Virus record (IMG/VR): IMGVR_UViG_3300028275_000006
Location: 1-64,000 of that record
DNA: 64,000 nucleotides
Strand: one strand, 5' to 3'
The number at the start of each line of letters is the position of its first letter. Within the stretch, counting starts at the first letter, position 1. The notes below the pieces were generated by a model. That model saw nothing but the letters and a program-made list of their open reading frames with translations. It was not told where the DNA came from and searched no databases. This document shows positions 18,901 through 50,594 of the stretch, in pieces. Both the position numbers and the translations under genes were made by a program.

Positions 18901-21900
18901 TTAGTTGACTTCTCATATGAAATGAGTTTCATAGATATTGCTGTAGGCGATTTAGTAAAAATTAAAAATGAAAAATCTGGTGGTTGGATTCTTTTAGAAA
19001 GAATTAATACACTAGTTACAGATAACATTTCTTTAAATTACACAACAGTAGGTCGTCAAAACGGAACAATCCAATTCAATAGTAATTTGTACAAGTTTAC
19101 AAATAGTAATATTGGATTTGATAGTTTTACCTATGATGGCGATGTATACGACGACGAACCAAAAGAAGAATTAAGAATTATTCTCGATGTCATTAAAAAT
19201 AATTTATTAATAGACGATTTAGAAGTAGAGTATAATAAGTTATTCTTTGCAAGTCTGCGTTACGTATTCTCAGAACAAACATTTGTTGATTGGGCATTTA
19301 AGACTTCGTTCGTTAAGAGTCAACACAACCTTGGCGAATTAAAACAAAAAGTTAATTATAAAAATGACAATCTTGCTAGTTACGAAGAATACATTAATGA
19401 AGTAAAACCTTACAGAACTAAAGTTAGAGAATTTATCAGCAATTACACAGCAACTGATAATACATATACAGGAACTACAGACTTTGACCTTCCAGCACGT
19501 TATGATACTGAAGAAGGAAAAATTCTTCCGTTTGATGTAAAAGTCAATAATTCTGTAATTACATATAACTCATCTGCAATATTAAATGCACCATACAGTG
19601 ATTGGTTAGATCATGCTGGATATCGTGTTACAGAAATTGTTGTTGTTGACGGTGGCTCAGGATACCAAGCCGCACCTGCTGTTGAAGTAGTTGGTGTGTG
19701 CAAAACTAAAGCCACTGCTAAAGCGTATATTTCACAAGGATCAGTAACAAAGATTGCAGTAGAAACTAAAGGAGAAGGTTACCTAACTACACCTACTATA
19801 GTTATTAGCGGATCAGTTGGCGCAAGCGGAGTAACAGCCAAGGCTACAGCAATTCTTGGAGAAGGCGTTACAAGAACAAACACCATTGGTGTTAAATTTG
19901 ACAGAATTATTCCGGAGTATCAAGTAAGTTCTATTACAATGTCGCAGACATTCGATGGTACAGGATCTAGAACATTGTTCCAGTTAAACTGGCCTATTGA
20001 TATTAGAACAAACAAGACTGCGGTAACAGTATCTAACGAAGAATTATTGTCTAGTGATTTTACAGTTTATAATAAGAAAGATACTTCGTTAGGATATACA
20101 CGTTATATTGGTATATTAGAGTTATCTACTGCGGCAGAAGTTGGCAGTTCTAATATTACTGTAACTTATACTAAAGATATAAGACTTCTTACAGCCGCAG
20201 ATAGAATTCAATATTACTATAGTCCAATAACAGGACAGATTGGTAAAGACCTAGGACAGTTAATGTCTGGAGTTGACTACGGCGGCGTTGAAATTACAGG
20301 GCTAGGATTTGAAATAAGTTCTGGTTGGGACGGACTTCCATGGTTTACTGCTGGCTGGGACGACTTCGATGAAGATTATACAGACTTTTTAGTTGTATCA
20401 GATGGTACAACACGTTCTTATAATCTGCCATATATTCCTGCAGATGGAGAACAGATTAACGTTTATATTAATGGTGTAAGAATTGATGACATTAATTATG
20501 ACGTTTACACCAGTGCCGAAACTGCATATAATACCGCAGCCGCATTATTAGAAGTTTATACTGCTGAAGAGATTGCTCTACAAGCAGATAAAGACGCTAA
20601 AGAAATAACAGTTAATTCTCTAACACAAGAGCTTATTGATACACAGGCAGTTATTGCTGACTTACAAGCACAGTTAGAAATTACCTCCCCAAGCGATCCT
20701 TTATACTTTGCTTTACAAACTACATTGGCAGAAAATCAAGCACAGGAAACACAGTTAATTTCAGACTTGACCATTGCCCAAGGCGAACTAGACGATGCAG
20801 AAGCATTACTAACAGCCAAACAAGTACAAGTGGCTAACAAAACTCTTGATGTTGCCGCAAAGTTAGCAACATTAAATGCAACCGATGAAATTACAAATCC
20901 AGATGCACAGATGCAGACATTTGTAGGAGACGGAAGCACTGATACTCCTATAGTCATTCCTGCATACGTAGATGTAAACAGCGGAGATACTATTATCTTC
21001 CGTAAGAGTACCAGCGATGGTAGTTTTAGACCAAACCAGCAATATTTAGACTCTGAAATCAGCGGCGGAGATTTTACATATACTACTGCCCGAGGCATTC
21101 GTGCAGAAGACATCAATCTTGACGGCGACAATTTTGTAACACCAACTAACAGCCATGCACCGGAAGAAGTAGTTACGGGACAGGTTGTAGACTCTGTAGC
21201 AATTACAGTCTACCATACTGTAGAAGACGGTACACCTATTATTGTCACAAGACATTATATAACAACAGAGCCAGAAAACGAGTTCTTAATTGGACAGCGT
21301 CCAAACAGCACTCAAGCGGCAGTTGTTAAATTAAACGGATTAATTAAAAAGCAAGATGTAGATTATACACTAAATTACGCTATGCAAAAAGTTGTGTTCC
21401 CAACTAACTTGCCTGTGGGCAGTGAAGTTGTGATTACTTCTATGAGCAAAAACGGTACAAGCATTCTTGATTCCGATTCATTTACTGGCGATGGTGTTTC
21501 TGTAGATTTTGTAACAGTAGCACGTTGGGATGGAGATTATTCTGCACTAGTTACTGTTAACGGTGTACCAGCCACAGTAACAACATTTGTAACAGATAAT
21601 ACTTACAGCGAAGTTGGAAACATTGGAATTAGATTTGCTACAGCACCAGTCAATACGGCAATTATCGACTACACGATTATTGGTACAGCATTAAACACAG
21701 TAAGTCGTGTTTCAACAGAAACTGTTGTTTATGACGGCACAAGTCAGGTGTATAGTTTAACAAATACACCGGCCAACTTACGTCCGTTTGATAATAACGT
21801 ATTAGTTGAATATGCTGGAAGAATTTTACGTCCGGCAGATACTGTTTATTTTGATGTCGTAGGAACAGTTCGTACTTACACAGTAAGCACAGTTGACTAT

Positions 21901-38503: not shown

Positions 38504-38952
38504 GAAACCTCAGACTTGCCTTCGGCAATCTTTTTAACATTAATAAATCCAGCACCTCTATCTGACATATCGATGCCCTCTTCGCTGGCTACATTTTTGC
38601 ATAGTTCTCTAAACCAACGATCCACAATTTCTTCATCAGGATCGCCATCAAATCCATAACCCGCTTGTTTTAATTGTACTACAAATTCATCGTTCCAGTC
38701 AATCTCGAAGAAACCATTCTTTAAGTTATCTTTATTGACATGTGTCTCCAAAACAGCGACCCAAGGTTCTCCTTTGGCTGTAGCACGGTCTTTTGGAGTC
38801 ATTTTAGCCAATTCTTCTTCGCGTTTGGCTACTGCTTCTTTGGCTGTTGCTTCTTCAGCACGGGCAAGTGCTTCTGCACGTTCTTTTTCTAGACGTTCTT
38901 TTTCTGCTTCTAATTTGTCTATGCCAAATAATTTTTTAATAATTGCTTTCAT
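38500..38952 (-). CDS. hypothetical protein with an N-terminal coiled coil
   Basis: Start moved to MKAIIKK after GGGGGA; acidic C-terminal domain. Confidence 0.65.
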   Translation of the reverse strand: MKAIIKKLFGIDKLEAEKERLEKERAEALARAEEATAKEAVAKREEELAKMTPKDRATAKGEPWVAVLETHVNKDNLKNGFFEIDWNDEFVVQLKQAGYGFDGDPDEEIVDRWFRELCKNVASEEGIDMSDRGAGFINVKKIAEGKSEVS

Positions 38953-39619
38953 GTTTCCCCCATACCCGCGATTGCGGATAAAAAAATGCGTTTTCGTTTT
39001 GCCCCATATCCCAAATAATACTGCCCATTGTATTTCTTTCATTTAGTGGCAACGATTGAATAAAAGTATTTGTACTATAACGAACACCTTTAGTTATTGG
39101 TTTAACTTCGTGTACCCAAAGAGGATCTGCTGGAAAAATCATAGCATCTCCTTTATTCAATTTAACTTCGTATCTGCCATTCCAAAAAGTAAATTCGCCA
39201 CCTTCATAGTCGTCATTTAATGAAATAGTACAACTGGCGTGAATCATTTCCTCCCAATCCACATGAGGATGTATCCATTCGCCGACTTCGTATTTCATAA
39301 GTCGGTGCATGTGGGAAAATCTTAAAGATTTTTTTAATGCTGTAGTGTGAAACGCTTTAAACTCTTCTAGATATGTTATCCAATCTTCGATAATTTTATT
39401 TGTATGATTATGTACTACTAAAAAGTTTTCTGTATCAGGAATTAACTCTACTCTTTTAAAAGTAGAAGTAGTCATTTTATTAGTTACGGCGTGTATGCAA
39501 CTTTCTTGAACCGCACTGGCAGAACGCAATTCGTATTCGTCAATTAACGAATTGCATTGGTCTTCTGTTAATGCGTTTCTAACAACAAAAATTAAATCGG
39601 ATAACTTTATATCTTCCAT
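38936..39619 (-). CDS. 2OG-Fe(II) oxygenase (prolyl-4-hydroxylase-like)
   Basis: HxD (HPHVD), LNDDYEGGEF, distal H (WVHEVKP) and R (GVRYS). Confidence 0.88.
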   Translation of the reverse strand: MEDIKLSDLIFVVRNALTEDQCNSLIDEYELRSASAVQESCIHAVTNKMTTSTFKRVELIPDTENFLVVHNHTNKIIEDWITYLEEFKAFHTTALKKSLRFSHMHRLMKYEVGEWIHPHVDWEEMIHASCTISLNDDYEGGEFTFWNGRYEVKLNKGDAMIFPADPLWVHEVKPITKGVRYSTNTFIQSLPLNERNTMGSIIWDMGQNENAFFYPQSRVWGKHESNY

Positions 39620-40483
39620 TTATGTTCCCCACTCATTTTTAAAGAGTGGAACTTGTAATCTATCGCTGTAGCGTAAACCGTTTTTCATTGCTAGTTCCGC
39701 TACACGCCTGTTGTTAAGAGTATAGACACTTTCAACGCCACCCACGGGCATAAGATATATAGGACCGGTAAAACCATTTTCTCTATAAATGTCAGCAGTT
39801 TCAATTGCTTCCTCCGCATCTTCTTCTGTGGCCACTACAAATTTAAGATATGTATGACCGTATTCTTCGTATTCACAAACTACGTCTGGACGAATTGCTT
39901 CGTGACGTTCTTCACCGGAGCAACTTAATTTAGCACTAACACTAAATGTAACTTCTCGCCAAAAATCTTTATCGCTGTGATATTTCCATGTGTGCAGATA
40001 TTGCTTGAACTCGTCGGTGAGTTTTTGAGTACCATTCGTTTCAAATGTAATCTCTTTTAAGTTTGTCATTTTTGGATGGTCGAGCAAGTCTGGATACGCT
40101 CGTTGCCATCCAAGCAAAGGTTCCCCTCCGGTAATGACCAAGTGTTCGTCTCGCCATTCGTTGAAGGGTAGAATCTCTGCGATCCTGTCTGCGATGGCGT
40201 CTGAAGTGAGCATTGGACTAAGATCCTTAAAGCGAGGATCCCAACTAGCATAACTATCACAGCCCGTAGATACCAAAGGAAGTTCTTCATATTTTTTATA
40301 TGGGGTTCGTTCATGTTGGATTGCAATATCTTCAACTTCTGTACTTAGTTCACCTTTTGGTAATCCAAAGCCAGCACATTTAAAGTTACAACCAAATGTT
40401 CTCAAGAAAACAGACGGTACACCCATGTAACGTCCTTCGCCTTGAATACTATAAAATAATTCTGCAATTTTTAATTTGCTCAT
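39620..40483 (-). CDS. queE: 7-carboxy-7-deazaguanine synthase (radical SAM)
   Basis: ELFYSIQGEG, VFLRTFGCN, VITGGEP, ETNGT, RLQVPL; the Cys motif is split by an insertion. Confidence 0.9.
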   Translation of the reverse strand: MSKLKIAELFYSIQGEGRYMGVPSVFLRTFGCNFKCAGFGLPKGELSTEVEDIAIQHERTPYKKYEELPLVSTGCDSYASWDPRFKDLSPMLTSDAIADRIAEILPFNEWRDEHLVITGGEPLLGWQRAYPDLLDHPKMTNLKEITFETNGTQKLTDEFKQYLHTWKYHSDKDFWREVTFSVSAKLSCSGEERHEAIRPDVVCEYEEYGHTYLKFVVATEEDAEEAIETADIYRENGFTGPIYLMPVGGVESVYTLNNRRVAELAMKNGLRYSDRLQVPLFKNEWGT

Positions 40484-40944
40484 ATACAGTCACCTTGTTC
40501 TGCCAGTTTACTGGCGCTTGATTTTTCTTTACCTGCTTGTCTAAACAGTTTAACATCTTTAATTGCAGATTTCAATGTTTCGGCATAATTCAGTGCCTGT
40601 TGTTCAGTCATAGAAATAGTTGTTTCAACGGTCACTGCACCAGTTGTCCAAAGTTGCCAAGTTACTTTCAAACGAGTCCATAGCCCATTAATTAAATCTT
40701 TAACAAACCAATCAATCTCTTGTAGATACGGACTATCAATATCGTATCTTTTTTCAACTAGTTCAGACCAATAATCAGTTTTAGCAGTTGCGTAAATGTT
40801 TACATTAATACCAGTCTCACTAGATTCAACTTCTACATTGTGATCGTGATACTCTTGCCCGCAACCGCAGACAATTTGATAAAACTTAGTGTCGCCAAAG
40901 TCACTGCGTTTTAGAATTCCTTCTGCTGGTTGCTCTAATTTCAT
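40480..40944 (-). CDS. hypothetical protein
   Basis: 154 aa; CGC..H near the N-terminus. Confidence 0.65.
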   Translation of the reverse strand: MKLEQPAEGILKRSDFGDTKFYQIVCGCGQEYHDHNVEVESSETGINVNIYATAKTDYWSELVEKRYDIDSPYLQEIDWFVKDLINGLWTRLKVTWQLWTTGAVTVETTISMTEQQALNYAETLKSAIKDVKLFRQAGKEKSSASKLAEQGDCI

Positions 40945-41261
40945 TGTTTGAACATCTCTAAGTTAATAATTTTAGCAACACGCTCGCCAATATCTTCTCC
41001 GTTAGGAATCACATAAGTTTGACTTTCGTGTCTATCTTTACGGTCATCGTAGTGTCTTACATTTAAAATTTTACCACCGACGGCGGTGCTTAATTCGAAA
41101 GTGATTCGTCCTTCACCTTCTGCACGACCGCGTTCTATTGCTTGTGCTGTTCCGATTGCCAATTTATACTCTCTTTCTTTCATAGTTGCTTCTTCGTACT
41201 TGTGTCGATTATCCCACATATCGCGGACTTTTCCATACAACCATTTATCGACAAAATTCAT
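40941..41261 (-). CDS. hypothetical protein
   Basis: Start at MNFVDK gives an ATGA overlap with the upstream gene. Confidence 0.6.
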   Translation of the reverse strand: MNFVDKWLYGKVRDMWDNRHKYEEATMKEREYKLAIGTAQAIERGRAEGEGRITFELSTAVGGKILNVRHYDDRKDRHESQTYVIPNGEDIGERVAKIINLEMFKQ

Positions 41262-41473
41262 TTGCATGTCTCCAACCATTTATCAAGAATATTTACAGCA
41301 TCATTGAAATCGATACCATATACTTCTGCACTGATAACATTGTCTTTGATTTGTATATCAAACGGAACAGTTCCGTTAAATCGAAAATCTTCGGGAACAT
41401 CTGTCTCTACAATATACTTGTGTAGATTTTTTGCTCTATTAATTAAATTAGTCGCCATGTCTACTGAATTCAT
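41258..41473 (-). CDS. hypothetical protein
   Basis: 71 aa, overlaps the folE stop codon. Confidence 0.55.
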   Translation of the reverse strand: MNSVDMATNLINRAKNLHKYIVETDVPEDFRFNGTVPFDIQIKDNVISAEVYGIDFNDAVNILDKWLETCK

Positions 41474-42168
41474 CTTGGTGCAAACTCCTGTTGTAGTTTA
41501 ATGTTATCAAAGAACTCTTTCTTTGTACCAGCATCGTCTTTGAACGCACCTTTAAGTACAGTAGTTTGAGTTAATGAACTATGTGCCATAATGCCACGAT
41601 TCTCACAGCATCCATGAACTGCCTGAATATAAACGCCAATATCACTTGCGCCAGTGGCCTTTTCAATTTCTCTGGCTATGTCGTTACACAATTCTTCCTG
41701 TAAGGTACCACGACGAGCGCACCATTGCGCGATTCGTGTGTATTTTGACAGCCCAATGAGTTTTTGGGCGGCGATGATTCCGATGTAGGCAACACCAGAA
41801 ACAGGCTGATGATGATGACTACACATACTACGAAGCTCACTCCTAACCACCAACATACCCTCATAACGATCTTCGCTATCGTTAGGAAACGCTGTTGCAT
41901 CTGGTGCTGGTTCATATCTTCCTGCCATTATTTCGTTAAAGTACATTTTTGCTAATCGTTTCGCTGTACCGTGCGAGTTAGGATCTGTCTCTCTGTCAAT
42001 AAGAAGTTTGTCTAAAACACTTTCAAATGCCTCAGTTGCTTCTTTGATTAGTTGTTCTTTGACTAGATCAGATTCGATGTATTCGCTGATGTTATCTCCT
42101 GCCCAGAATCTTTTTCCGTCTAGGACCATCTTTTCGCGAATCGCTTGTGCTAAATTTTTTTCTGACAT
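41470..42168 (-). CDS. folE: GTP cyclohydrolase I
   Basis: SMCSHH, GLSKYTRI, QEELC, HGCCENRGI. Confidence 0.95.
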   Translation of the reverse strand: MSEKNLAQAIREKMVLDGKRFWAGDNISEYIESDLVKEQLIKEATEAFESVLDKLLIDRETDPNSHGTAKRLAKMYFNEIMAGRYEPAPDATAFPNDSEDRYEGMLVVRSELRSMCSHHHQPVSGVAYIGIIAAQKLIGLSKYTRIAQWCARRGTLQEELCNDIAREIEKATGASDIGVYIQAVHGCCENRGIMAHSSLTQTTVLKGAFKDDAGTKKEFFDNIKLQQEFAPR

Positions 42169-42182
42169 TATTTCTCCGAGTT

Positions 42183-42200
42183 ATAGACGAGGATGTCTAT
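42183..42200 (-). promoter_or_regulatory. leader hairpin upstream of the folE SD
   Basis: ATAGAC-ATCCTC-GTCTAT between the -10 box and GGAG. Confidence 0.45.
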
Positions 42201-42205
42201 GTAAT

Positions 42206-42234
42206 ATAATATAGTTTATTTAGGTTTTTGTCAA
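42206..42234 (-). promoter_or_regulatory. sigma70-type promoter for the folE-queE operon
   Basis: TTGACA-N17-TATTAT. Confidence 0.75.
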
Positions 42235-42447
42235 CTAAGTGCGTATACTTTTCTTATCAATATGTTGTTGTTCATATCGTAATCTACGGCATTCTTCCCT
42301 GACTGTATTAGGGATATCAGGATGCCATTCTGCCATCCCGCAATCATAGATGCGAGTTTGACTACCGTAATCGGTAAAAATAAGAATAAGCACAGCCGCT
42401 ATTAAAGCGACTGCGGCTGTAATCTTTCCGATAATAGTATCCGACAT
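42235..42447 (-). CDS. small membrane-anchored protein
   Basis: N-terminal hydrophobic helix; two Cys (DCG...ECR). Confidence 0.6.
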   Translation of the reverse strand: MSDTIIGKITAAVALIAAVLILIFTDYGSQTRIYDCGMAEWHPDIPNTVREECRRLRYEQQHIDKKSIRT

Positions 42448-42635
42448 AAGTCAGCATCCTTTTTTGATTTGAATGTAAATTTCATGTAGTCGTGTTGTGG
42501 ATGACTTTCGTATCTTCCGCCAGGTAGGCCAAATACTTCGAGCACCATGGCGCAAGTTTCATTCCACCAAAAACCTGATTGCCCGTCCCAATGGACGTAG
42601 ATATTATTCTGATCTTCCACTGGTGCAACTATCAT
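42402..42635 (-). CDS. hypothetical protein
   Basis: 77-aa ORF. Confidence 0.55.
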   Translation of the reverse strand: MIVAPVEDQNNIYVHWDGQSGFWWNETCAMVLEVFGLPGGRYESHPQHDYMKFTFKSKKDADLCRILLSERLQPQSL

Positions 42636-42804
42636 TCCAAAGTTCTTGTGCTCTGCGCTTATAGTCTTCTAATTCCCACACGGCTAATTTTTCACGAAAT
42701 ACTTCTTCGCTTAATCCGTGCCAGCCGATACAGTCTCCTGTAGGACTACGACCACAACCGCAAGTTCCAATTTTCTTTCCTTCTTCAGGTACTCTTACTT
42801 GCAT
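42604..42804 (-). CDS. CDGSH-like Fe-S/zinc-finger protein
   Basis: CGCGRSPTGDCIGWH resembles C-x-C-x2-S-x5-C-D-G-S-H; likely start MQVRV. Confidence 0.55.
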   Translation of the reverse strand: MQVRVPEEGKKIGTCGCGRSPTGDCIGWHGLSEEVFREKLAVWELEDYKRRAQELWNDSCTSGRSE

Positions 42805-43168
42805 TTTTATAATTTCCTTTACTTGGTATAACGTGACGAACCCCGCCACGAGGGTCTTCCATATCACCCTTGCGTCTAGGGATCATGTGTATATGAGGAT
42901 ACATTACTGTTTGGCCAGCAGTCTCGCCACAGTTTTGTCCGACATTAAAAGCGTCCCAACGTTCAGATTGGACACCATCGAACCCGAACTTGTATGCTCC
43001 TTTGAAACATTCGACGATGTTGGTAAAACGTTCATAGGTTGGCACAAAAAGCAAATGTCCTTCCGTAACTGGGTAGGCATCGTTGAAGACCCAATAGTCT
43101 TTTGTTCTGTACTCGATACTAGTCCATGGTGCTCTGCGTTCATCTAGTGCCCTTTCTAAATCAGTCAT
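42785..43168 (-). CDS. HIT-family nucleotide hydrolase
   Basis: DAYPVTEGHLLFVP; GETAGQTVMYPHIHMIPRR.GD. Confidence 0.88.
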   Translation of the reverse strand: MTDLERALDERRAPWTSIEYRTKDYWVFNDAYPVTEGHLLFVPTYERFTNIVECFKGAYKFGFDGVQSERWDAFNVGQNCGETAGQTVMYPHIHMIPRRKGDMEDPRGGVRHVIPSKGNYKNASKST

Positions 43169-43716
43169 AACCAAAATTCTTCCCAAGGATAAACAAGCCA
43201 ACAATCTTCTTGTCGCTTGTCTACGGTCCAAACATGATAGTCTGGATCTTTAAACTCACTGCCGTAATTATGTGTTAATACAGCAAAACGAACATTGTCT
43301 CCCCATACTTGATTCCATGCTTCATCGTTAGGAAAACAACCACTGGGCCAATCTTTCTTAATCCAATTAAGAGTAGATCCTTGATCGTTAATATCGTCTA
43401 CAATTAAGATTTTCTTTTTAAGACGTTCTAAATGTTTGTGATCGCCCCAAATGTGCCTTTCGTCATTGGGAACAACTCCCAAGGCATCTTCGGCCATCCA
43501 AAGATTACTTTCGCAATCGTTTTTATTATCGCGAAGGCTGACATTAAGTGTGTGCATCTTAATGCCAGTATATTGACTTAGTAAGTTAGCCGGAACAAGA
43601 CCACCGCGTGTAATACCTACAATATAGTCAGGCCTCCAATTATGTTCAGACATTTGGCGAGCAATTTCTAAACATGCGCCTTCAACTTGTGACCAACTGT
43701 AGTATACTTTCTTCAT
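43165..43716 (-). CDS. type I phosphoribosyltransferase (purine/Gpt-like)
   Basis: IVGITRGGLVPA, PRPP-binding ILIVDDINDQGST, WLVYPWE. Confidence 0.88.
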   Translation of the reverse strand: MKKVYYSWSQVEGACLEIARQMSEHNWRPDYIVGITRGGLVPANLLSQYTGIKMHTLNVSLRDNKNDCESNLWMAEDALGVVPNDERHIWGDHKHLERLKKKILIVDDINDQGSTLNWIKKDWPSGCFPNDEAWNQVWGDNVRFAVLTHNYGSEFKDPDYHVWTVDKRQEDCWLVYPWEEFWL

Positions 43717-43949
43717 GCAGTTAACCCATAGGCCAATGATTGACATTCTTCTTTAGTCATAAAGAAATTATAAGTTTGTGTACCAACAACTTCACCGTCT
43801 TTAAGACTTTCTTGAACCATATCGATACTAAACAAACCTTTAGGGCTTAGTACTTCGTGTTTCTTTAATGTTAGCCTAAAACCGGCGTGTTCTTTGACAA
43901 CCATTTCTTTATAAGTATCTCTAACTGATTCATGTAGTTCCATCATCAT
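43713..43949 (-). CDS. hypothetical protein
   Basis: 78 aa, coupled to the PRTase start. Confidence 0.55.
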   Translation of the reverse strand: MMMELHESVRDTYKEMVVKEHAGFRLTLKKHEVLSPKGLFSIDMVQESLKDGEVVGTQTYNFFMTKEECQSLAYGLTA

Positions 43950-44382
43950 CTCCTTTAATTGCGTCCCACGTTCTATATTTGGCTAATGCCTTAATATAGT
44001 CATCATACATCTTTTTTAACTTTGGATGCTTCTTTTCTAGTTTAACATCTCGCTCGGGAATTTGCAAGACTTTTTCAATTGTGTTTAACCTTTCTTCTAG
44101 GTCAACACCATTTAATACCATTCGACCTTTAACTTCTAACTCCGGTGGATCGTTTTTGGCAACCATCACCGGATTGGTAGTAGGATTAGCCCAAGTTACA
44201 TTTGTACCTGTAGTATAAGTTAACGGCACAGATGTAGTGCCGGCTCCGGTTGAAATCGTATATCCACTGCCAGAGCCGCCTGTGCCGTTCGATACTAAAA
44301 CACTACCTGAACCGGCACCGGAACCTGCTATGCCGCCGGCTGTATTAAGTATTACGCTTCCGTGATTGTAAGTATAGCTCAT
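43930..44382 (-). CDS. hypothetical protein with a Gly/Thr-rich N-terminus and a helical C-terminus
   Basis: 150-aa ORF. Confidence 0.6.
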   Translation of the reverse strand: MSYTYNHGSVILNTAGGIAGSGAGSGSVLVSNGTGGSGSGYTISTGAGTTSVPLTYTTGTNVTWANPTTNPVMVAKNDPPELEVKGRMVLNGVDLEERLNTIEKVLQIPERDVKLEKKHPKLKKMYDDYIKALAKYRTWDAIKGDDDGTT

Positions 44383-44800
44383 TTGGTATCCATTTATTAT
44401 TAACGAGAAATCCCCATTCTCTCTTTTGCGGACCTGGCATAAAAAGTGTCCAACACTCTACGTTGGGATCAATTTCAATTCTATGAAAACTGTTGGCACT
44501 ACAAATTCTAAAGTGTCCAGGCTTTCTCCATTTGGCAATTTCACAGACCTTTACTCCCTGGCTGTTAAATTGAGGAATCCATTCCCAATAGCCACCTTTT
44601 AGAATAAGTGTGGCATAAGGCCATGGGTGATCATGCACATCATCTGGATCACCTTTATGAAACTTGTGTAAGAATACATTAAATGGAAACCATTTACGAT
44701 CCTTTAAAAATAGATAATAACGTGTAAGTAACGGCTCGTCACAGGTACGATCCATAATAATACGCTTGCGACCGAGACGTTCTAACAGTTTTAATATCAT
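44345..44800 (-). CDS. cupin-fold protein
   Basis: HDHPWP...LKGGYWE and distal FHRIE: the H-x-H...E...H metal site. Confidence 0.75.
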   Translation of the reverse strand: MILKLLERLGRKRIIMDRTCDEPLLTRYYLFLKDRKWFPFNVFLHKFHKGDPDDVHDHPWPYATLILKGGYWEWIPQFNSQGVKVCEIAKWRKPGHFRICSANSFHRIEIDPNVECWTLFMPGPQKREWGFLVNNKWIPNELYLQSRKRNT

Positions 44801-45870
44801 ACAAGTCTTTCTAAGAGTCCATTTGCAGAAAAGAAATTTTCAGTTAAGTCTTGAGTTTGTTTTCTAAGTTGTGGTAAAAACTTTTCATAGTTATCCATAT
44901 ACTGGATAATCTTTGCACATATTTCTGGACGGTGTGCTTTATATGCTTCGAAACTTTCAGTCCATTCACTAGGATACTTAAAAGTATCATAGCCCATTTC
45001 ACTGTAACTAAGTCTATCTGGCACCATAGGAATAGCATCTACAACAGCGCCTTCATACCAACTAATCCCTAATGTCTCTTGTAAGTTTGCAGAGAACACT
45101 AATTTCGATTCGCCTAACAAGTTATGATATTCATTTTTTGTTAGTTGTTGATCCTGACAGACTACGAACTCGTACTGTGGCAAGTGTTCTTTTAAATCTC
45201 TAAAAATTTCAACTTGCTTCTCGGGTGCGATGCGATGAGGGAAAAGAATTAAATCACGTTTTTTCATCCCTTTATATGGAGTTAATGTATCTTCCATATA
45301 CTCCATTGGCCAACCTGTGCGTACAATTTTTCCTTTATCGATATATGATGCTTTTGCAGTATCGTAATCTATGTTTAAAAGATTATGACAAAACATTTCA
45401 ATATGGAATGTTGTAGCAAAGTAGTTATGATCTATAGCATGAAAGAAACTCTTTTCAGCATTTCTGACCCAAGGAGCATCGCCAATTAGACGACCTAAAA
45501 AGTCCTGTGGATCGTAACTACCGGCATGCCATAGTGCGTGAATAGTTACAGGAATCTGTAACAGTTCACTCATATACTTTAGGTTGATGATACCAGGGTG
45601 CCAAGCATCAGTAAAGATGAAGTGATCATTAGGAGCCACTGATCCGGCGCAAAACAACCTACCCATTTGCTCAACTTGAGCAGACTTGTATATATTGGTG
45701 CCACCAAAATTAAGAAAAGCACCAGGAGTAGTGGCTGAAGGAATATCCGTAGGCCCAGATAAAACTTGAACATCGTGTCCTCTCTTTCTCAGGATAGCCG
45801 GTAGGTGGGTCTTCCACTGCGCTGTATAGCGTGTTTCTACCGGCTCAAGGTCTACTAAGTAGACGGTCAT
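44797..45870 (-). CDS. GT-B glycosyltransferase (GT4-like)
   Basis: LFPHRIAPEK; EX7E motif ETLGISWYE; IPMVPDRLSYSE. Confidence 0.82.
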   Translation of the reverse strand: MTVYLVDLEPVETRYTAQWKTHLPAILRKRGHDVQVLSGPTDIPSATTPGAFLNFGGTNIYKSAQVEQMGRLFCAGSVAPNDHFIFTDAWHPGIINLKYMSELLQIPVTIHALWHAGSYDPQDFLGRLIGDAPWVRNAEKSFFHAIDHNYFATTFHIEMFCHNLLNIDYDTAKASYIDKGKIVRTGWPMEYMEDTLTPYKGMKKRDLILFPHRIAPEKQVEIFRDLKEHLPQYEFVVCQDQQLTKNEYHNLLGESKLVFSANLQETLGISWYEGAVVDAIPMVPDRLSYSEMGYDTFKYPSEWTESFEAYKAHRPEICAKIIQYMDNYEKFLPQLRKQTQDLTENFFSANGLLERLV

Positions 45871-46100
45871 TGGCGACCATTCCTGTAGTTGTTATTGTAC
45901 CCGTTGTTATTACGGGGACGATTTTCAAATCGTCTGTCGTTGTTATAACGACGAGGACGCTTAGACGCCTCGTAAGCCTGCCAAGTTTTACTTTGGCGGT
46001 TATACAAGTCTGCCTCATTGTAAGGCAGAAGGTTGAATCTGCAAAAATCTAGCAGATTGTCAAGATCGTCAAAAATTTGAACGACTTCTTTTTTCATCAT
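45867..46100 (-). CDS. small protein with an Arg/Asn-rich tail
   Basis: C-terminal RPRRYNNDRRFENRPRNNNGYNNNYRNGRQ. Confidence 0.6.
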   Translation of the reverse strand: MMKKEVVQIFDDLDNLLDFCRFNLLPYNEADLYNRQSKTWQAYEASKRPRRYNNDRRFENRPRNNNGYNNNYRNGRQ

Positions 46101-46108
46101 TGTTTCCT

Positions 46109-46504
46109 TTAGTATTTGATGAATGAACCATTTTCTCCGTCTTCGGAGACCTCAATCCAAATCTCGCGATTTGGATACTTCTTGCTAATGATGTCATGTA
46201 ATTCGTCAGACATCATTTCACAACTCTTGTAGTCAAGGCTTATAGTGGCACCTTGACCATTATACAACGACTCGAGCCATCGTTTGAATTGGATGAATTC
46301 GATGTCCCTGTCATTGTGTTGCACACTGATCCACACCCTGAAATGAAAGATGTGGCGATGAGGGTGACCCAAAAACGATACGTCATATTCGTCTCCTGTT
46401 GCTAGATTAGGATCTGTTAGTGCCGCAGGATACTTATGGATACCTTCTTTGCGGAAAGTTACCCAGATCATTTTGTTTGGTCTAATGTCTTGTTTGATAA
46501 TCAT
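46109..46504 (-). CDS. dpdL: QueD-paralogous T-fold protein, DpdL-like
   Basis: LGHPHRHIF (LxxxHRHxF in place of QueD CxxxHGH), SCEMMS, VSEDGENG; start at MIIKQ (ATGA overlap). Confidence 0.65.
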   Translation of the reverse strand: MIIKQDIRPNKMIWVTFRKEGIHKYPAALTDPNLATGDEYDVSFLGHPHRHIFHFRVWISVQHNDRDIEFIQFKRWLESLYNGQGATISLDYKSCEMMSDELHDIISKKYPNREIWIEVSEDGENGSFIKY

Positions 46505-47040
46505 GTTGGTGTATCTTGAGTGTACAAATCCCAATGAGTATACTTGTCTTTAGTCATTAGGCTTTGTAAATGATGTGTCCACACACCTGGATTTGTAGCA
46601 CCCCAAGTTCGGTCATCCAGTTTGAGTGTGGCATTGTAGTTGAGTTGATTAATGTAGGGTAACTTGACACTAATCATAGGTACAAACTTGGGATATTCGT
46701 TATAAGCAGACTCTAGTACGCCTTCGATGTGTTCAACACCAAAGTCTAGAGCTACCCAATAGCCTGCTTTTAGACAGCCTATAATAACTTCGTCCCATGC
46801 TTTGTATTCTTCGTGTGAAATACTTTTAGGATTAAAACTTTGACTAGTGCCAAAGTAAATTTGTTTAATGCGTTTGTTTTCGTCTAAGTATGCTTGTGTG
46901 TCACCAGCAATACGTAGTATTTCTTCTAGCGGAGGAGTGCCTACTACAAATAGTGTATACATACCATAGCAAATAGTATGTTCGACTTCGTAGCCTGTAA
47001 AGTAGACAATGTCTTGTCTTTCTTCAGTGTTTAATCCCAT
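46501..47040 (-). CDS. uncharacterised alpha/beta protein inside the deazaguanine cluster
   Basis: 179 aa; TLFVVG, IYFG, LKLDD...ATNPGVW; no family recognised. Confidence 0.7.
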   Translation of the reverse strand: MGLNTEERQDIVYFTGYEVEHTICYGMYTLFVVGTPPLEEILRIAGDTQAYLDENKRIKQIYFGTSQSFNPKSISHEEYKAWDEVIIGCLKAGYWVALDFGVEHIEGVLESAYNEYPKFVPMISVKLPYINQLNYNATLKLDDRTWGATNPGVWTHHLQSLMTKDKYTHWDLYTQDTPT

Positions 47041-47921
47041 TTAATATAACCTCTGCTATAACCATTTGGACGATCCACACCATCCGCAAATGCTTGTTGC
47101 CATTCTGTGTTACGATTATAACCTTTTGTCCAGAAAGAATCAACCTCTAGTTTACCGTTTTCAATCATCCAACGTGCTTCAAACATAGCACCAATAAATT
47201 CTTCTGTTCTTGGACTTGGTTTAACTGTAGTAACAGCCTTCCAAAGTTGTTGTTGTGCTTCTTCTTTACTTACTGCTTTACCAACAGCATCAATGATTAC
47301 TGCATTGTTATTTAGATTAATGTCGGTACCTAGTTGATATTTTCCAGATAAATCTACTATCAAATCGTAACTGTCGGTAGTACCTAACAGTAACGCATCT
47401 CCCCAAAGTTCCTGATTACTAGAACCTAGTACATCTACTTCAAGTTCTGGAAAATGATGTGCCAGGTTATTAAAAACTACCCATGCAAGGAAACCACTAC
47501 CTAGGATTAAGCATTTACCATTTTGTCTACGTTCAAAAAGAGTATACGCTTGTCTAATACAGTTAACACCACAGGCCACTGGTTCTAAAATGTAACGTGG
47601 ATGTAGTTCTAAAACTGTTACAAACTCACCGTCACGACAGTTGTAATAATCTGCGTATGCTGGTTCGCCGCGGGTAGCAACATAATCGCCTACTTTAACA
47701 CCTAATACACTGGCACCGACTTTAGTTACGATTCCTAGACCTTCGTGACCTTGCATGTGTAGTGGTAAAGGTCCAAAGTTGCCCTGCATCATATCTATGT
47801 CACTGCGACATACACCAGTCATAACTGCTTTAACTTCAATTTCAGTTGACGTAGGTTCTGGCTTTGCATATTCTACTTCTTCAAAGTAACCTTGTCCAGT
47901 TGTTTGTAGACAGCGTGTCAT
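47031..47921 (-). CDS. zinc-dependent medium-chain dehydrogenase (MDR)
   Basis: GVCRSD, GHEGLG, EPVACG, LILGSG; structural-zinc Cys lobe absent. Confidence 0.88.
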   Translation of the reverse strand: MTRCLQTTGQGYFEEVEYAKPEPTSTEIEVKAVMTGVCRSDIDMMQGNFGPLPLHMQGHEGLGIVTKVGASVLGVKVGDYVATRGEPAYADYYNCRDGEFVTVLELHPRYILEPVACGVNCIRQAYTLFERRQNGKCLILGSGFLAWVVFNNLAHHFPELEVDVLGSSNQELWGDALLLGTTDSYDLIVDLSGKYQLGTDINLNNNAVIIDAVGKAVSKEEAQQQLWKAVTTVKPSPRTEEFIGAMFEARWMIENGKLEVDSFWTKGYNRNTEWQQAFADGVDRPNGYSRGYIKWD

Positions 47922-48796
47922 AGTTTTTCTATTCTTTCGTGTATCCAAAGGTCAATTTCTAACTGTACTTTCCAGTACTCGTCATTATTTAGGTTTTCTA
48001 CAGCATCTTTAATCATATTTAGGTACGCTTCTTCTGGACACCAGCCTAACTCAAATACATCTTTGGTATTATCTTGATTAATAAATGTAATAGCACTACG
48101 TTCAACAGTCATACTGCGCCAGTTAGCACGGCAGTTCCATTTAGAACCAAATCCAATGTGACACTGGTCGTCTACATCATAAGTTCCATTTGGGTTTACA
48201 GTACCATACTCTGTGCTTTCGATATCTTTTAACAGCCATGATTGTATAGATGATTCGCCGTTAACTTTTTCTATGCGCCAGTCTGGATGTAGTGCAATAT
48301 ACAAACTTAATAAGTGTGGCATTAAGTCCCTACTAACTCCGCCAAATGCTAGTTTGCGTGTAGTAAACCAACTACCTGGGCTAGGAATACAGTTCTTTCT
48401 AATCCATTCGATGTCTACATTCTTTGCTACTTTAGCCTTTTCCTGTAATTCTGCAATATTGTCACGCCACATATTATTTTTAACCATCATAAATCGTGTG
48501 CGTGGAAATCTTTTACATAATTTAGCCCATTCGTTTCTATTAATCAGTCCAGGCTTTTCAATAAAGACAATTTTACTGATAGGAGCCAGTTTAACGGCTA
48601 ATTCTAAATGCGTAAAATTTGGTGTGCAAATATGTACGGTGTCAAAAGACCCGTGAAGTAATATGGCTGGTTCTATACTAGGGAAGTCGGCATTTTTATT
48701 AATGTCTGTATCGACAGTACAAACTTCATAACCTAATTGAGTTAGGACAGATTTATATAACTGTCCTATTCCCATTCCTACAACTAAACTTTTCAT
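47918..48796 (-). CDS. Gfo/Idh/MocA-family oxidoreductase
   Basis: VVGMGIG, ICTPNFTH, FIEKPG, GGVSRDLMPH. Confidence 0.85.
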   Translation of the reverse strand: MKSLVVGMGIGQLYKSVLTQLGYEVCTVDTDINKNADFPSIEPAILLHGSFDTVHICTPNFTHLELAVKLAPISKIVFIEKPGLINRNEWAKLCKRFPRTRFMMVKNNMWRDNIAELQEKAKVAKNVDIEWIRKNCIPSPGSWFTTRKLAFGGVSRDLMPHLLSLYIALHPDWRIEKVNGESSIQSWLLKDIESTEYGTVNPNGTYDVDDQCHIGFGSKWNCRANWRSMTVERSAITFINQDNTKDVFELGWCPEEAYLNMIKDAVENLNNDEYWKVQLEIDLWIHERIEKL

Positions 48797-49050
48797 CTAT
48801 ATGTTGGTAGTTCGTTAACACATTTAATAAGAGATCCGGATTGTTTGCCCGCTAATTGATGTAGCGCATAATCCGGAGAGGATACACAGGCTTCGTGCCC
48901 ATTGAATTTATCTGCTAGGGCAATGGTGTTGCCAGTTTCTGCAAATTTAATTACAAGATAGTAGTCGTTTGGACCCACGGCATCTGCCGTTTTATAAAAC
49001 AAACCAAAACTTAATACTGCTAAAACACCAATGCCTAGTAGTTTTTTCAT
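48793..49050 (-). CDS. small exported protein
   Basis: Signal peptide MKKLLGIGVLAVLSFG..ADA; two Cys. Confidence 0.6.
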   Translation of the reverse strand: MKKLLGIGVLAVLSFGLFYKTADAVGPNDYYLVIKFAETGNTIALADKFNGHEACVSSPDYALHQLAGKQSGSLIKCVNELPTYR

Positions 49051-50594
49051 TTTACGCCTTCTTCGAGTTCGTCAAGTTTAGCAATTTCATCATCGGTAAA
49101 TTCTTCACCGTGCTCTAATTGTACACTCTCTTCCTCTACTTCGTCAAACAGTTTGGCAAATTGTGTACTTGCGTTTACAGTCTTCTTACCTACTGCTCCG
49201 CGAGTTCCAATAATACTTTGCCAAAATTTATTATACTCTTCAACGACTTTGTCTGCTTCTGCACGACTACTAGTAGCAAAAATGGCTTCTACTACATCTT
49301 TAAAGAATAGTCTATCAAACCGTTCTTCTACTAACATAGCAGGAACAATGCCCAAATCGTATTGACGATTGGCTTCTTGTACAGCATTAATGTGCATCCA
49401 AACATTATGGCCCATTAAGATAGCGTAACTAAAACTATCCCACGAAGTTTTACCTTCCTTGCCAATCTTGTTTAGATCCCCGGGCCCGTAAATACAAACA
49501 TCTTTAATTTGAACCCCGTCAATAATTGGACTATTGTCAAAGTTTTTAAAATGTCCGTCCTGTACTACTGCATCGCGGAATAGTCTAGTATCTTTACTAT
49601 ATTTTTTATTATCGATACTAGGTAACATTCTATATACCCACTTAGTTCTGTCTTGTGTTTCTGTTTGAACGTATACTTGTCCGTTTGCAGTTGCTAAGAA
49701 TGGACTAGCACAGTCGAAACTAATTGTAAAGTTAGGATTGTGATACTTGCGTACAGCACGTTGAATGTCTGTTAATAAACAAGCCCACTCTAATTTACTA
49801 GTACCTAAGAAGTGCATCCAGTCTTGTTTGCCCTGTTCAAGTAATCCGTCAAATCGTAATGCTACTAGGCGTTTTAATACCAAGTGTACATCACACATAT
49901 TCTGACCACCCATGGCCCAACCGTTAAATGCACGGTCACCGTAGACAGTAGGATCGCAGTACTTCTTCATTCGGTCATACCAATCGTCTGCATCGGTATG
50001 ATTTTCACCTTGGAGAACGTTTAAGAATTTACAATTACCATTGCGATTGTTTACAAACCAATCGTTGTTAATGTAAGTACCTTGAACTGCTTCTGCGTAT
50101 GTAGTAATGCCTGTGGCTTTTTGTCCAGCAGGGCTACGAGCTACCCAAGCAGGGATATCAAGACACATACCATAGTCCATTAGACTATCCATCCACTTAA
50201 GAACCTGTTCACGTTTCTTTTGTGCTTTAGGACAGTTGGGATTCTTCCAATCGCCTTCCCATACACCTTTACCAATTTGGAAACCACCGGAGTCGCCTAG
50301 TACCCAACTAGTACTGCGATCTCTATTACGAAACATATCTTCGCTGTGATCAACTTTGTTAAGGTCTAGATTAGCATGACCTGCACTATACAAGCAGTGG
50401 TCATAGTAGAACGCACCTTTTTCCGGTTCTAAGTAGTTTAGACTTTCTACTCCGTTTTTAAAACTAGCAGGAACTCTTGCCGGATCAACATAGTTTCCAT
50501 ATCTTTGTTTACCTATAAAGGTACTATAGAAACCGCTAGTTGCCGGCAAAAAGTATGCGTAGTCGTTTTGTGTTGCGGTTAAATTTTTATTCAT
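49047..50594 (-). CDS. dpdA: TGT-fold guanine transglycosylase, DpdA-like (7-deazaguanine insertion)
   Basis: TGT barrel motifs in order: LGDSGGFQ, CLDIP, NVLQG, WAMGG, MHFLG, SFDCASP; no CxCxxC zinc site of tRNA TGTs. Confidence 0.82.
   Translation of the reverse strand: MNKNLTATQNDYAYFLPATSGFYSTFIGKQRYGNYVDPARVPASFKNGVESLNYLEPEKGAFYYDHCLYSAGHANLDLNKVDHSEDMFRNRDRSTSWVLGDSGGFQIGKGVWEGDWKNPNCPKAQKKREQVLKWMDSLMDYGMCLDIPAWVARSPAGQKATGITTYAEAVQGTYINNDWFVNNRNGNCKFLNVLQGENHTDADDWYDRMKKYCDPTVYGDRAFNGWAMGGQNMCDVHLVLKRLVALRFDGLLEQGKQDWMHFLGTSKLEWACLLTDIQRAVRKYHNPNFTISFDCASPFLATANGQVYVQTETQDRTKWVYRMLPSIDNKKYSKDTRLFRDAVVQDGHFKNFDNSPIIDGVQIKDVCIYGPGDLNKIGKEGKTSWDSFSYAILMGHNVWMHINAVQEANRQYDLGIVPAMLVEERFDRLFFKDVVEAIFATSSRAEADKVVEEYNKFWQSIIGTRGAVGKKTVNASTQFAKLFDEVEEESVQLEHGEEFTDDEIAKLDELEEGVK

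Follow-up and report, generated by a model that had tools for sequence, protein, structure and literature searches.

Does a glycosyltransferase (GT) gene encoded close to dpdL in a large river phage point to a sugar placed on the 7-deazaguanine that replaces guanine in phage DNA? The gene lies in a window of 64,000 nucleotides (IMG/VR record IMGVR_UViG_3300028275_000006, positions 1 to 64,000), the genome itself being at least 270 kb. An earlier note, made from the sequence alone, had recognized glycosyltransferase motifs that recall the queuosine mannosyltransferase QTMAN/GTDC1, and had inferred from the proximity of dpdL that a sugar is added to a deazaguanine in phage DNA. What the note saw in the sequence is confirmed: the open reading frame is real, and its three motifs, FPHRIAPEK (residues 210-218), QETLGISWYE (residues 264-273, with E265 and E273 forming the EX7E motif) and IPMVPDRLSYSE (residues 280-291), occupy invariant or near-invariant columns of a large, almost purely viral family. 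In an alignment of 60 homologues at 28-53% identity, F210, R213, K218, E265, G268, I269, L287, S288, Y289 and E291 are at least 90% conserved, whereas E273 and P284 are invariant; the motifs are therefore family signatures and not chance strings. The statement that one short ORF separates the gene from dpdL also holds. The features of the locus are collected in the table.

Table. Predicted features of the GT locus, all on the minus strand; clade refers to the window's own clade.
Coordinates	Strand	Assignment	Observations
39620..40483	-	QueE (7-carboxy-7-deazaguanine synthase)	tblastn 49% to the annotated QueE of BUCT-ZZ01 and 30% to that of PA5oct
41470..42168	-	FolE (GTP cyclohydrolase I)	tblastn 59% to the annotated FolE of Phosso and 32-34% to four other phages
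42785..43231	-	HIT-family protein, accessory gene	PF01230; 40 of 63 clade loci
43165..43746	-	Phosphoribosyltransferase (xanthine/guanine PRT-like)	PF00156; 53 of 64 clade loci; recurs in the deazaguanine clusters of BUCT-ZZ01 and PA5oct; may salvage the guanine released by DpdA or activate the deazapurine base (inference)
44345..44800	-	Cupin of PHROG 4786 ('cysteine dioxygenase')	Overlaps the GT stop codon; probably not part of the module, because homologues are common in unrelated phages that lack the GT
44797..45870	-	Predicted GT-B/GT4 retaining-type glycosyltransferase, 357 aa, ATG start	QTMAN-like C-terminal donor domain, family-specific N-terminal domain (residues 1-185); R213 and K218 (diphosphate pair), E265 and E273 (EX7E), P284-D-R-L-S-Y-x-E291
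45867..46100	-	Short ORF, 77 aa	Between dpdL and the GT; Asn/Arg-rich tail; in 78 of 80 clade loci but variable (median 49% identity); strain variants replace this stretch
46109..46534	-	DpdL (QueD-like T-fold protein, proposed 7-carboxy-7-deazaguanine decarboxylase)	LGHPHRHIF; tblastn matches to 28 phage records including phiST; homologues align from residue 21-23, so the real start is probably the internal ATG near 46471
46501..47040	-	Conserved protein, 179 aa	69 of 69 clade loci, otherwise only in GT-plus-DpdL phages (PA5oct group and ACP17); possible further member of the module; model pLDDT 84, no fold match in PDB by Foldseek and none assigned by the Atlas
47031..48796	-	Accessory insert of two sugar-type oxidoreductases: Zn-ADH-like (47031-47948) and Gfo/Idh/MocA (47918-48796)	Only 14 of about 60 clade loci, so not core; possible sugar tailoring (inference)
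49047..50594	-	DpdA-type DNA-guanine transglycosylase candidate (TGT superfamily), 515 aa	DSGGFQ (101-106) and FDC (293-295), invariant in its family

The predicted fold is that of a GT4-type glycosyltransferase. Single-sequence searches against Pfam, PHROGs, NCBIfam and PDB gave nothing usable, and megablast of the 9-kb cluster against cultured phages gave no match; however, an AlphaFold model (pLDDT 96, pTM 0.93) contains two Rossmann-like domains and recovers 177 PDB matches at E<=0.001 with Foldseek, led by retaining GT4 enzymes (BshA, MshA, GlgA, and LmbT, E about 1e-10). The EX7E motif and the R-x4-K diphosphate-binding pair are conserved in the C-terminal domain. The window protein has no hit to PF00534 (Glycos_transf_1) at E<0.1, whereas 37 of 60 relatives match it at E<=0.01 (best 3e-8).

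The resemblance to QTMAN/GTDC1 is real but covers only half of the protein, as judged from bacterial members of PF12038 (QTMAN_N), which stood in for the eukaryotic GTDC1. Against 30 verified bacterial PF12038 proteins, the C-terminal nucleotide-sugar domain matches at hhalign probability 99.8 and E 1e-30. The phage-family profile scores 45-84 bits on 100 of 103 bacterial QTMAN-family proteins, against at most 25 bits on any PDB sequence, solved GT4 enzymes included, and reciprocal HMM hits are likewise far above those to solved GT4 enzymes. The counterparts of the family-specific motifs WPHRWEHDKxP, HEFFGxAxxE and GCxPxLPxRLAYPE are FPHRIAPEKQV, QETLGISWYE and AIPMVPDRLSYSE. The N-terminal domain, which defines QTMAN and should hold the acceptor, is not shared: no PF12038 hit is found in the window protein or in any of 60 relatives, although 10 of 10 bacterial family members hit it in the same library at E 1e-38 to 1e-63, and hhalign of the N-terminal domains gives a probability of 6.6. 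The protein is therefore not a QTMAN family member, and the argument that a related enzyme has a related acceptor does not follow from the homology. The neighbours of bacterial QTMAN-family genes show no queuosine genes; TsaE recurs in 14 loci.

Gene order provides the stronger evidence. In about 11 lineages, including the PA5oct group, ACP17, Phosso, BUDD, BCSR5, BUCT-ZZ01, and four divergent metagenome contigs, the GT gene lies beside or within about 3.5 kb of dpdL, together with folE, queE, and a DpdA-type transglycosylase gene. Among cultured phages, it is adjacent to dpdL in Phosso, PA5oct, ACP17, and BUCT-ZZ01, within about 3.5 kb of it in BUDD/X1 and BCSR5, and directly adjacent to the DpdA gene in PA5oct, ACP17, BUDD, and BCSR5. 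In the window's own clade, dpdL is present in 71 of 71 loci, DpdA in 54 of 54, queE in 49 of 49, and folE in 53 of 56. A search for related loci with an 11-sequence alignment returned only close relatives (75-100% identity), but among divergent metagenome homologues (29-36% identity) all four contigs with enough flank have dpdL immediately upstream of the GT. The association is asymmetric: 18 of 18 phage records with full-length GT hits also have dpdL, while dpdL occurs without the GT in the phiST group (where dDG is proven), RHph_I1_18, Ahp1, Bakedbeans, D479, and MA9V-3, the pattern expected of a decorating enzyme acting on the DpdL product. Full-length GT relatives lacked an obvious dpdL in one contig only (P0199, a 7-kb contig with a 35%-identical homologue), where none is seen among the listed neighbours and the gene sits with a second GT4, an ATP-grasp protein, a PRTase, and a NUDIX protein.

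The other components of the module are identified with unequal certainty. The LGHPHRHIF motif fits the published DpdL signature LxxxHRHxF (PMC10516641), and its ORF matches the DpdL region of Cellulophaga phage phiST by tblastn. The DpdA candidate rests on motifs, model-based neighbours, and synteny, since HMM searches against Pfam and PDB found nothing: DSGGFQ and FDC are TGT motifs, the Atlas feature score is 0.93 to TGT (PF01702) and 0.88 to DpdA (PF23859) with a structural TM of 0.81, the PA5oct homologue lies directly upstream of the GT homologue, and the homologue in Vibrio phage 2.275.O lies beside queF, queC, and folE. No queC-like hit was seen among the cluster ORFs scanned. No canonical queD was detected in the 64-kb window, either by tblastn with three phage QueDs or by hhalign of seven small ORFs; it may lie elsewhere in the genome or be supplied by the host. 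Reads from riverine DNA libraries and from libraries labelled RNA cover the locus at similar, flat depth, so transcription is not shown.

The interpretation offered in the earlier note is thus partly supported: the GT4 assignment stands, the kinship with QTMAN is limited to the donor domain, and the addition of a sugar to a deazaguanine of phage DNA is supported independently and more strongly, by conserved gene order across many lineages, without chemical demonstration. The best explanation, held with moderate confidence, is that the gene encodes a retaining GT4-type glycosyltransferase that is an optional add-on to the DpdL branch of phage 7-deazaguanine DNA modification. In this view, FolE, a QueD, and QueE would make 7-carboxy-7-deazaguanine, DpdL is proposed to strip the carboxyl group, giving 7-deazaguanine, and a DpdA-type transglycosylase would exchange that base for guanine in phage DNA. 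The glycosyltransferase would then transfer a sugar from a nucleotide-sugar onto the base, most likely from GDP-mannose and most likely after insertion into DNA, yielding a glycosylated deazaguanine that further shields the genome from nucleases. The analysis itself establishes the modelled fold with its catalytic motifs, the kinship of the C-terminal domain with the QTMAN family, and the conserved gene neighbourhood; glycosyl transfer with retention of configuration, the acceptor, the donor, the order of the steps, the attachment site, and the presence of the modified base in virion DNA are all inferred.

The proposed donor is suggested by the QTMAN-like C-terminal domain, as QTMAN uses GDP-mannose and forms an alpha linkage (10.64898/2026.06.28.735034). 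Indirectly, two phage lineages place GDP-mannose-type genes directly downstream of the GT: a ManC-type GDP-mannose pyrophosphorylase/isomerase in the lineage designated L219, and a PF01050 mannose-6-P-isomerase-type cupin plus an FkbM methyltransferase in that designated L215. PA5oct DNA resists five restriction enzymes in a pattern suggesting a modified G and is sensed by nucleases specific for hypermodified DNA, its chemistry being undetermined (PMC12191111). Expression of ACP17 dpdL with dpdA in E. coli gave no dDG, and the authors suggested that other enzymes may be needed (PMC10516641).

Several considerations weigh against this explanation, in addition to the absence of chemical data for any GT-bearing phage. 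7-Deazaguanine has no hydroxyl group, so the sugar would need an unusual C- or N-linkage, or DpdL or another enzyme must make a different acceptor; because the GT depends on the branch that leaves C7 unsubstituted, a C7 C-glycoside is one logical option, yet no GT4 enzyme is known to C-glycosylate. The lack of similarity to QTMAN_N means that homology says nothing about the acceptor. The P0199 homologue without an obvious dpdL, the more distant paralogues of the PhiXhv-12 group, and the lack of a canonical queD in the window also count against it. The family is acidic (median pI 5.7), which gives no support for DNA binding, but the DpdA family is equally acidic, so that isoelectric point does not discriminate between DNA and small-molecule acceptors. 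Two possible sources of an acceptor hydroxyl were considered and dropped. The ADH and Gfo/Idh/MocA genes, which might create a hydroxymethyl acceptor, are confined to a minority of clade loci and occur in no other lineage. The adjacent cupin, which might supply a hydroxyl group or be a mannose-isomerase cupin, has homologues widespread in unrelated phages and shows no similarity to the PF01050 cupin of L215.

Among the alternatives, the one that survives best, although unlikely, is that the sugar goes on before insertion: the GT would glycosylate the free deazapurine base (7-deazaguanine or 7-carboxy-7-deazaguanine) or its nucleotide, and the DpdA-type enzyme or the polymerase would put the pre-glycosylated unit into DNA. 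The best structural neighbours of the enzyme act on small molecules (BshA on malate, MshA on inositol-phosphate, and LmbT on ergothioneine), the family is acidic, a phosphoribosyltransferase recurs in these clusters, the associated DpdA candidates are unusually large (515-596 aa), and dpdL plus dpdA of ACP17 alone gave no dDG. On the other hand, QTMAN, the closest family, works on the base already inserted in a polynucleotide, and GT homologues co-occur with at least two different DpdA subfamilies, which is easier to explain if DpdA does not have to accept the sugar. Moreover, Cui et al. conclude that phage deazaguanine modifications are inserted after replication by DpdA, and no case of a pre-glycosylated base being inserted is reported there.

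It is more doubtful still that the GT is only a neighbour, glycosylating a phage or host protein, a cell-envelope glycan, or another DNA base, and located in the early or nucleotide-metabolism region by chance or for shared timing of expression. Phage GT4 enzymes with other roles are common, more distant paralogues in the PhiXhv-12 group sit with GlmS and an LmbE-like deacetylase and no deazaguanine genes, and P0199 has no obvious dpdL nearby. However, adjacency to dpdL and DpdA is kept in about 11 lineages whose surrounding genes and gene order otherwise differ, with hosts from Pseudomonas, Acidovorax, Xanthomonas, Burkholderia, and Sinorhizobium to Synechococcus, and all 18 full-length hits in cultured phages are in dpdL genomes. 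A glycosylated pterin in place of a DNA base, made by FolE, the PTPS-like T-fold enzyme DpdL, and a pteridine glycosyltransferase in parallel to cyanobacterial biopterin glucoside synthesis, is very improbable. In its favour, the tetrahydrobiopterin glucosyltransferase 5zes is among the Foldseek hits (rank 41, E 1.4e-7) and DpdL is a QueD/PTPS paralogue; against it, the pterin GT is no closer than dozens of other GT4 enzymes, queE and a TGT-like transglycosylase are co-conserved, DpdL lacks the catalytic Cys of QueD/PTPS, and dDG is the proven DNA base in a DpdL phage.

Known 7-deazaguanine DNA modifications carry small substituents (cyano, amido, aminomethyl, methyl, formyl, or carboxyl) or none; a glycosylated purine in DNA is not known, and none turned up in the papers searched, nor was a paper describing the proposed sugar addition found. 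A sugar-bearing deazaguanine would be a new class of DNA hypermodification. It may explain why PA5oct-type therapeutic jumbo phages resist restriction and are sensed by nucleases that detect hypermodified DNA, and why the DpdL pathway could not be rebuilt from dpdL plus dpdA alone. As more than 8,000 close metagenome proteins and 1,111 clusters at 50% identity were found, the modification would be widespread in river, lake, and soil phages. The question is open to direct testing, because cultured phages carry the gene and dDG-containing DNA can be made by PCR with 7-deaza-dGTP. In a bolder and unlikely version, a mannose (or other hexose) would be joined directly to the free C7 carbon by a retaining GT4 enzyme acting as a C-glycosyltransferase on DNA, and a donor domain of common ancestry with the eukaryotic and bacterial queuosine mannosyltransferase family would have been recruited separately for sugar-coating deazaguanines in tRNA and in viral DNA. 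The specific kinship of the donor domain with the QTMAN family also gives an evolutionary link between RNA and the proposed DNA deazaguanine glycosylation.

The closest known system is the QTMAN/GTDC1 family (PF12038 + PF00534), the tRNA-queuosine alpha-mannosyltransferase. The common motifs are [FW]PHRxxxxKxP, the EX7E box (HEFFGxAxxE against QETLGIxxxE), and GCxPx[LV]PxRL[AS]YxE, and both are linked to a 7-deazaguanine base placed by a TGT-type transglycosylase; the neighbouring GDP-mannose genes of the two phage lineages fit the QTMAN donor. Besides the missing N-terminal domain, the likely target, as the genomic context suggests, is DNA or a free base and not tRNA, and the likely acceptor, 7-deazaguanine, lacks the cyclopentenediol hydroxyls that QTMAN uses. 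With generic retaining GT-B enzymes of GT4 (BshA, MshA, PimA, GlgA, and WaaG), the protein shares the predicted two-Rossmann fold (TM 0.6-0.67), the EX7E motif, and the R/K diphosphate pair, but sequence similarity is marginal and the N-terminal domain carries its own invariant residues (Q65, W90, G117, and E139). With the DpdL-type cluster of Cellulophaga phage phiST (dDG), it has in common folE, queE, dpdL, and a DpdA-type transglycosylase gene, without a queC having been seen; phiST and several other dpdL phages have no GT, whereas here an extra transferase and, in this clade, the conserved 179-aa orphan protein are added, which predicts a further-modified base. The T-even phage DNA glucosyltransferases acting on 5-hydroxymethylcytosine differ in the base, which here is a purine analogue with no hydroxymethyl handle, and in the GT family, no T4 glucosyltransferase appearing among the 50 best Foldseek PDB hits shown. 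The working logic is nevertheless the same: a non-canonical base is first installed, and an optional phage-encoded GT-B enzyme then sugar-coats it as a counter-defence (PMC13216743).

The gene under study encodes a clean 357-aa reading frame, in which the motifs FPHRIAPEK (residues 210-218) and QETLGISWYE (residues 264-273) and a third motif at residues 280-291 are found as the earlier note had described them; its observation is thus confirmed. The window belongs to a large myovirus with T4-like replication and structural genes, including a family-B DNA polymerase, a baseplate wedge and tail fibres. A single ORF of 4,694 aa, exceptionally long for a phage protein, lies inside the baseplate and tail-fibre block, between the baseplate wedge gene and tail-fibre-like genes. 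The locus of the glycosyltransferase (GT), taken with 10 kb on each side, is 100% identical to two IMG/VR contigs of 212 and 270 kb, and the phage occurs in many riverine metagenomes. As a single sequence, the protein has no hit in Pfam, PHROGs, NCBIfam or PDB. Nevertheless, it belongs to a very large family, comprising more than 8,000 metagenome proteins (of which the 120 best listed are at least 81% identical) and 1,111 cluster representatives at E<=0.001 in the 50%-identity library, almost all of the family being labelled viral in the ESM Atlas. In 60 diverse full-length members, the three motifs fall in invariant or near-invariant columns.

Coordinates of the features discussed in the text
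Sequence	Position	Strand	Feature
Window	6465-9896		Baseplate wedge gene
Window	9907-23991	+	Very long ORF in the baseplate and tail-fibre block
Window	38936-39619	-	2OG-Fe(II) oxygenase-like ORF (PHROG 61)
Window	39620-50594		Region in which folE and queE are present and no canonical queD was detected
Window	43165-43746	-	Xanthine/guanine-type phosphoribosyltransferase
Window	44797-45870	-	Predicted GT4-type glycosyltransferase (GT)
Window	45757-46109		Stretch replaced in related strains (contigs join 45757 or 46027 to 46109)
Window	46501-47040	-	Orphan 179-aa protein
Window	49047-50594		Candidate DpdA-type transglycosylase
L205 (another phage with a deazaguanine/GT cluster)	5084-5545		Xanthine/guanine-type phosphoribosyltransferase
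L209 (Rhizobium phage RHph_I1_18)	6971-8232		dpdL without the GT, followed by a macro-domain gene
L211 (Xanthomonas phage PhiXhv-12)	3669-6903		Distant GT paralogue with GlmS and an LmbE/BshB-like deacetylase
L215 (divergent metagenome contig)	8407-9424		PF01050 cupin and FkbM-type methyltransferase genes following the GT
L219 (divergent metagenome contig)	8122-9519		ManC-type gene following the GT
P0199 (7-kb contig of a GT homologue)			Xanthine/guanine-type phosphoribosyltransferase
L084-L203 (bacterial genome contigs)			PF12038 (QTMAN_N) glycosyltransferases

The AlphaFold model built on the alignment of these 60 members is confident (pLDDT 96.3, pTM 0.93). A Foldseek search against the PDB returns retaining GT4 GT-B enzymes at E about 1e-10 and TM 0.6-0.67, among them BshA, archaeal glycogen synthase, MshA, LmbT, GlgM and PglA. 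In BFVD only the protein of phage ACP17 and one unnamed 370-aa protein are close (TM 0.83-0.90), while the remaining hits are generic viral GT4 enzymes. PF00534 is hit by 37 of the 60 relatives and PF13439 by 3. The residues Arg213 and Lys218 (R-x4-K) and Glu265 and Glu273 (EX7E) correspond to the standard donor-binding residues of GT4 enzymes.

The earlier note had claimed a kinship with the queuosine mannosyltransferase QTMAN/GTDC1. No solved QTMAN structure appeared in the PDB searches; however, a structure search of the Atlas placed a bacterial PF12038 (QTMAN_N) cluster at TM 0.74 among the nearest non-viral neighbors, although a generic actinobacterial GT4 cluster scored higher (TM 0.80). 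To obtain sequences for comparison, the QTMAN motif quoted in the earlier note served only as a means of retrieval: a degenerate DNA pattern for PHRWE[HY]DK found more than 120 loci in bacterial genomes, mainly of Phycisphaerae, other Planctomycetota, Coriobacteriia and other Actinomycetota, against an estimated nine or so matches by chance. The ORFs carry a conserved [WF]PHRWE[HY]DK motif, and ten of ten tested match PF12038 at E 1e-38 to 1e-63, usually together with PF00534. These glycosyltransferases, with an almost invariant WPHRWEHDK motif, are common in the bacterial groups named; mannosyl-queuosine is not known to have been reported in these bacteria. Their recurrent neighbors include TsaE (tRNA t6A) in 14 of 88 loci, but no queuosine genes.

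Thirty of the bacterial proteins were aligned and compared with the phage family. The whole-length profile-profile comparison gives a probability of 99.7 and E 7.6e-27 over 277 columns. When split by domain, the signal is entirely C-terminal: the C-domains match with a probability of 99.8 and E 1e-30, whereas the probability for the N-domains is 6.6. The HMM of the QTMAN family hits 84 of 84 phage GTs at 36-54 bits, and the phage HMM hits 100 of 103 QTMAN-family proteins at 45-84 bits. As a control, the same phage HMM reaches at most 25 bits on any of 177,635 PDB sequences, which include many GT4 families, while the QTMAN HMM reaches 41.7 bits on one PDB fragment (5i45) and at most 28 bits on all others. 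The resemblance is therefore genuine and specific, but it concerns the nucleotide-sugar half; the N-terminal half, which defines the family and should bind the acceptor, is different. Hence, the protein should not be classified as a QTMAN family member.

A tblastn search of 50,697 phage genomes finds full-length GT homologs in Sinorhizobium phage Phosso (49% identity), eleven PA5oct-type Pseudomonas jumbo phages (41%), Acidovorax phage ACP17 (36%), Xanthomonas phages BUDD and X1 (26%), Synechococcus phage BUCT-ZZ01 (25%), and Burkholderia phage BCSR5 (23%). Every one of these 18 records also has a dpdL homolog. In the annotated regions, the GT is embedded among folE, queD, queE, dpdL, and a DpdA gene. 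A presence matrix shows that only queE, folE, dpdL and the GT recur across all six loci (folE lies outside the PA5oct stretch examined), with DpdA genes of more than one subfamily alongside. In the window, folE and queE are present but no canonical queD (CPH4 synthase) was detectable; the gene may lie elsewhere in the genome, which is at least 270 kb, or the host enzyme may be used.

Within the window's own clade of 80 IMG/VR loci, the constant genes are dpdL (71/71), the 515-aa DpdA candidate (54/54), queE (49/49), folE (53/56), and the orphan 179-aa protein (69/69). Among cultured phages, the last of these is found only in the GT-plus-DpdL phages of the PA5oct group and ACP17; its model (pLDDT 84) has no PDB fold match and no informative Atlas neighbor, and it is a possible unrecognized member of the modification pathway. 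The ADH and Gfo/Idh/MocA pair (14 of about 60 loci), the HIT protein and the phosphoribosyltransferase are accessory. The phosphoribosyltransferase recurs inside deazaguanine/GT clusters of unrelated phages and may recycle the guanine released by base exchange or activate the deazapurine. The 2OG-Fe(II) oxygenase-like ORF directly flanking queE is found in only 2 of 80 related loci, and is thus a strain-specific accessory gene. Contigs from two libraries labelled RNA and one DNA run join position 45757 (or 46027) to 46109, so related strains replace the short ORF between dpdL and the GT, and possibly the first codons of the GT, with other sequence; read depth peaks over the 3' part of dpdL because many related strains share it.

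Four divergent metagenome homologs with usable flanks (the contigs L212/L213, L215, L217, and L219) all have dpdL immediately upstream of the GT. The converse does not hold, as dpdL occurs without the GT in the phiST group, RHph_I1_18, Ahp1, Bakedbeans, D479, and MA9V-3. In the phiST group, guanine in the DNA is fully replaced by 2'-deoxy-7-deazaguanosine. In RHph_I1_18, a dpdL 59% identical to that of the window is followed by a macro-domain (Appr-1-p processing) protein, another possible variation on the DpdL branch. A gene that needs dpdL, while dpdL does not need it, looks like an optional decorating step acting on the product of the DpdL branch. There are exceptions: one 35%-identical homolog (P0199) sits on a 7-kb contig without an obvious dpdL, and more distant paralogs in the PhiXhv-12 group sit with GlmS and an LmbE-type deacetylase. 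The paralog of PhiXhv-12 itself (25% identity over 65% of the query) has no deazaguanine genes beside it and may represent a different, amino-sugar-based modification system.

The candidate transglycosylase has no HMM hit, but other evidence points to a DpdA-type enzyme. Its family keeps the motifs DSGGFQ and FDC invariant, which in TGT are the substrate-binding and nucleophile motifs, and the Atlas places it next to TGT (PF01702) and DpdA (PF23859) clusters both by features (0.93 and 0.88) and by structure (TM 0.81). Its homolog in PA5oct lies immediately upstream of the GT, while that in Vibrio phage 2.275.O lies beside queF, queC, and folE.

With regard to the donor, the gene directly downstream of the GT in L219 (a 281-kb contig with a GT 36% identical to that of the window) encodes a complete ManC-type protein with NTP_transferase, ManC_GMP beta-helix and MannoseP_isomer domains, all above the Pfam cut-offs. 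In L215, the downstream genes encode a PF01050 cupin and an FkbM-type methyltransferase. The mannose-metabolism genes in these two divergent lineages hint at mannose, possibly O-methylated, as the sugar. QTMAN uses GDP-mannose and makes an alpha linkage; together with the QTMAN-like donor domain, this makes GDP-mannose the best guess, at moderate confidence.

In the proposed sequence, GTP would be converted to CDG by FolE, QueD and QueE, and CDG to 7-deazaguanine by DpdL (itself only predicted), which would then be exchanged into DNA by DpdA and finally receive a sugar from the GT. The weak point is chemical, as 7-deazaguanine offers no hydroxyl group. The product might be a C-glycoside at the electron-rich, unsubstituted C7, which would explain the dependence on the decarboxylating branch; an N-glycoside; or a glycosyl ester on dCDG; alternatively, there may be an as yet unrecognized hydroxylated intermediate. 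Transfer to the free base rather than on DNA remains a rival possibility that the present evidence does not decide. Published observations are consistent with the proposal: PA5oct DNA behaves as G-modified and hypermodified, with undetermined chemistry, and dpdL plus dpdA of ACP17 did not yield dDG in E. coli. No paper in the literature searched describes a glycosylated deazaguanine in DNA or discusses this GT.

The interpretation offered in the earlier note, a QTMAN-related enzyme adding a sugar to a deazaguanine of phage DNA, is partly supported: the homology holds for one domain only, and the functional idea is supported by synteny and not by that homology. The analysis itself establishes the conserved motifs, the predicted fold, the kinship of the C-terminal domain and the gene neighborhood, whereas glycosyl transfer as such, its stereochemistry, donor, acceptor, attachment site, and place in the order of steps are inferred. 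The system is of high interest, as it is widespread, occurs in cultured and therapeutic phages, and is directly testable. Deazaguanine modification of DNA and glycosylation of phage DNA are each already known; the system proposed here would differ from both in combining them.
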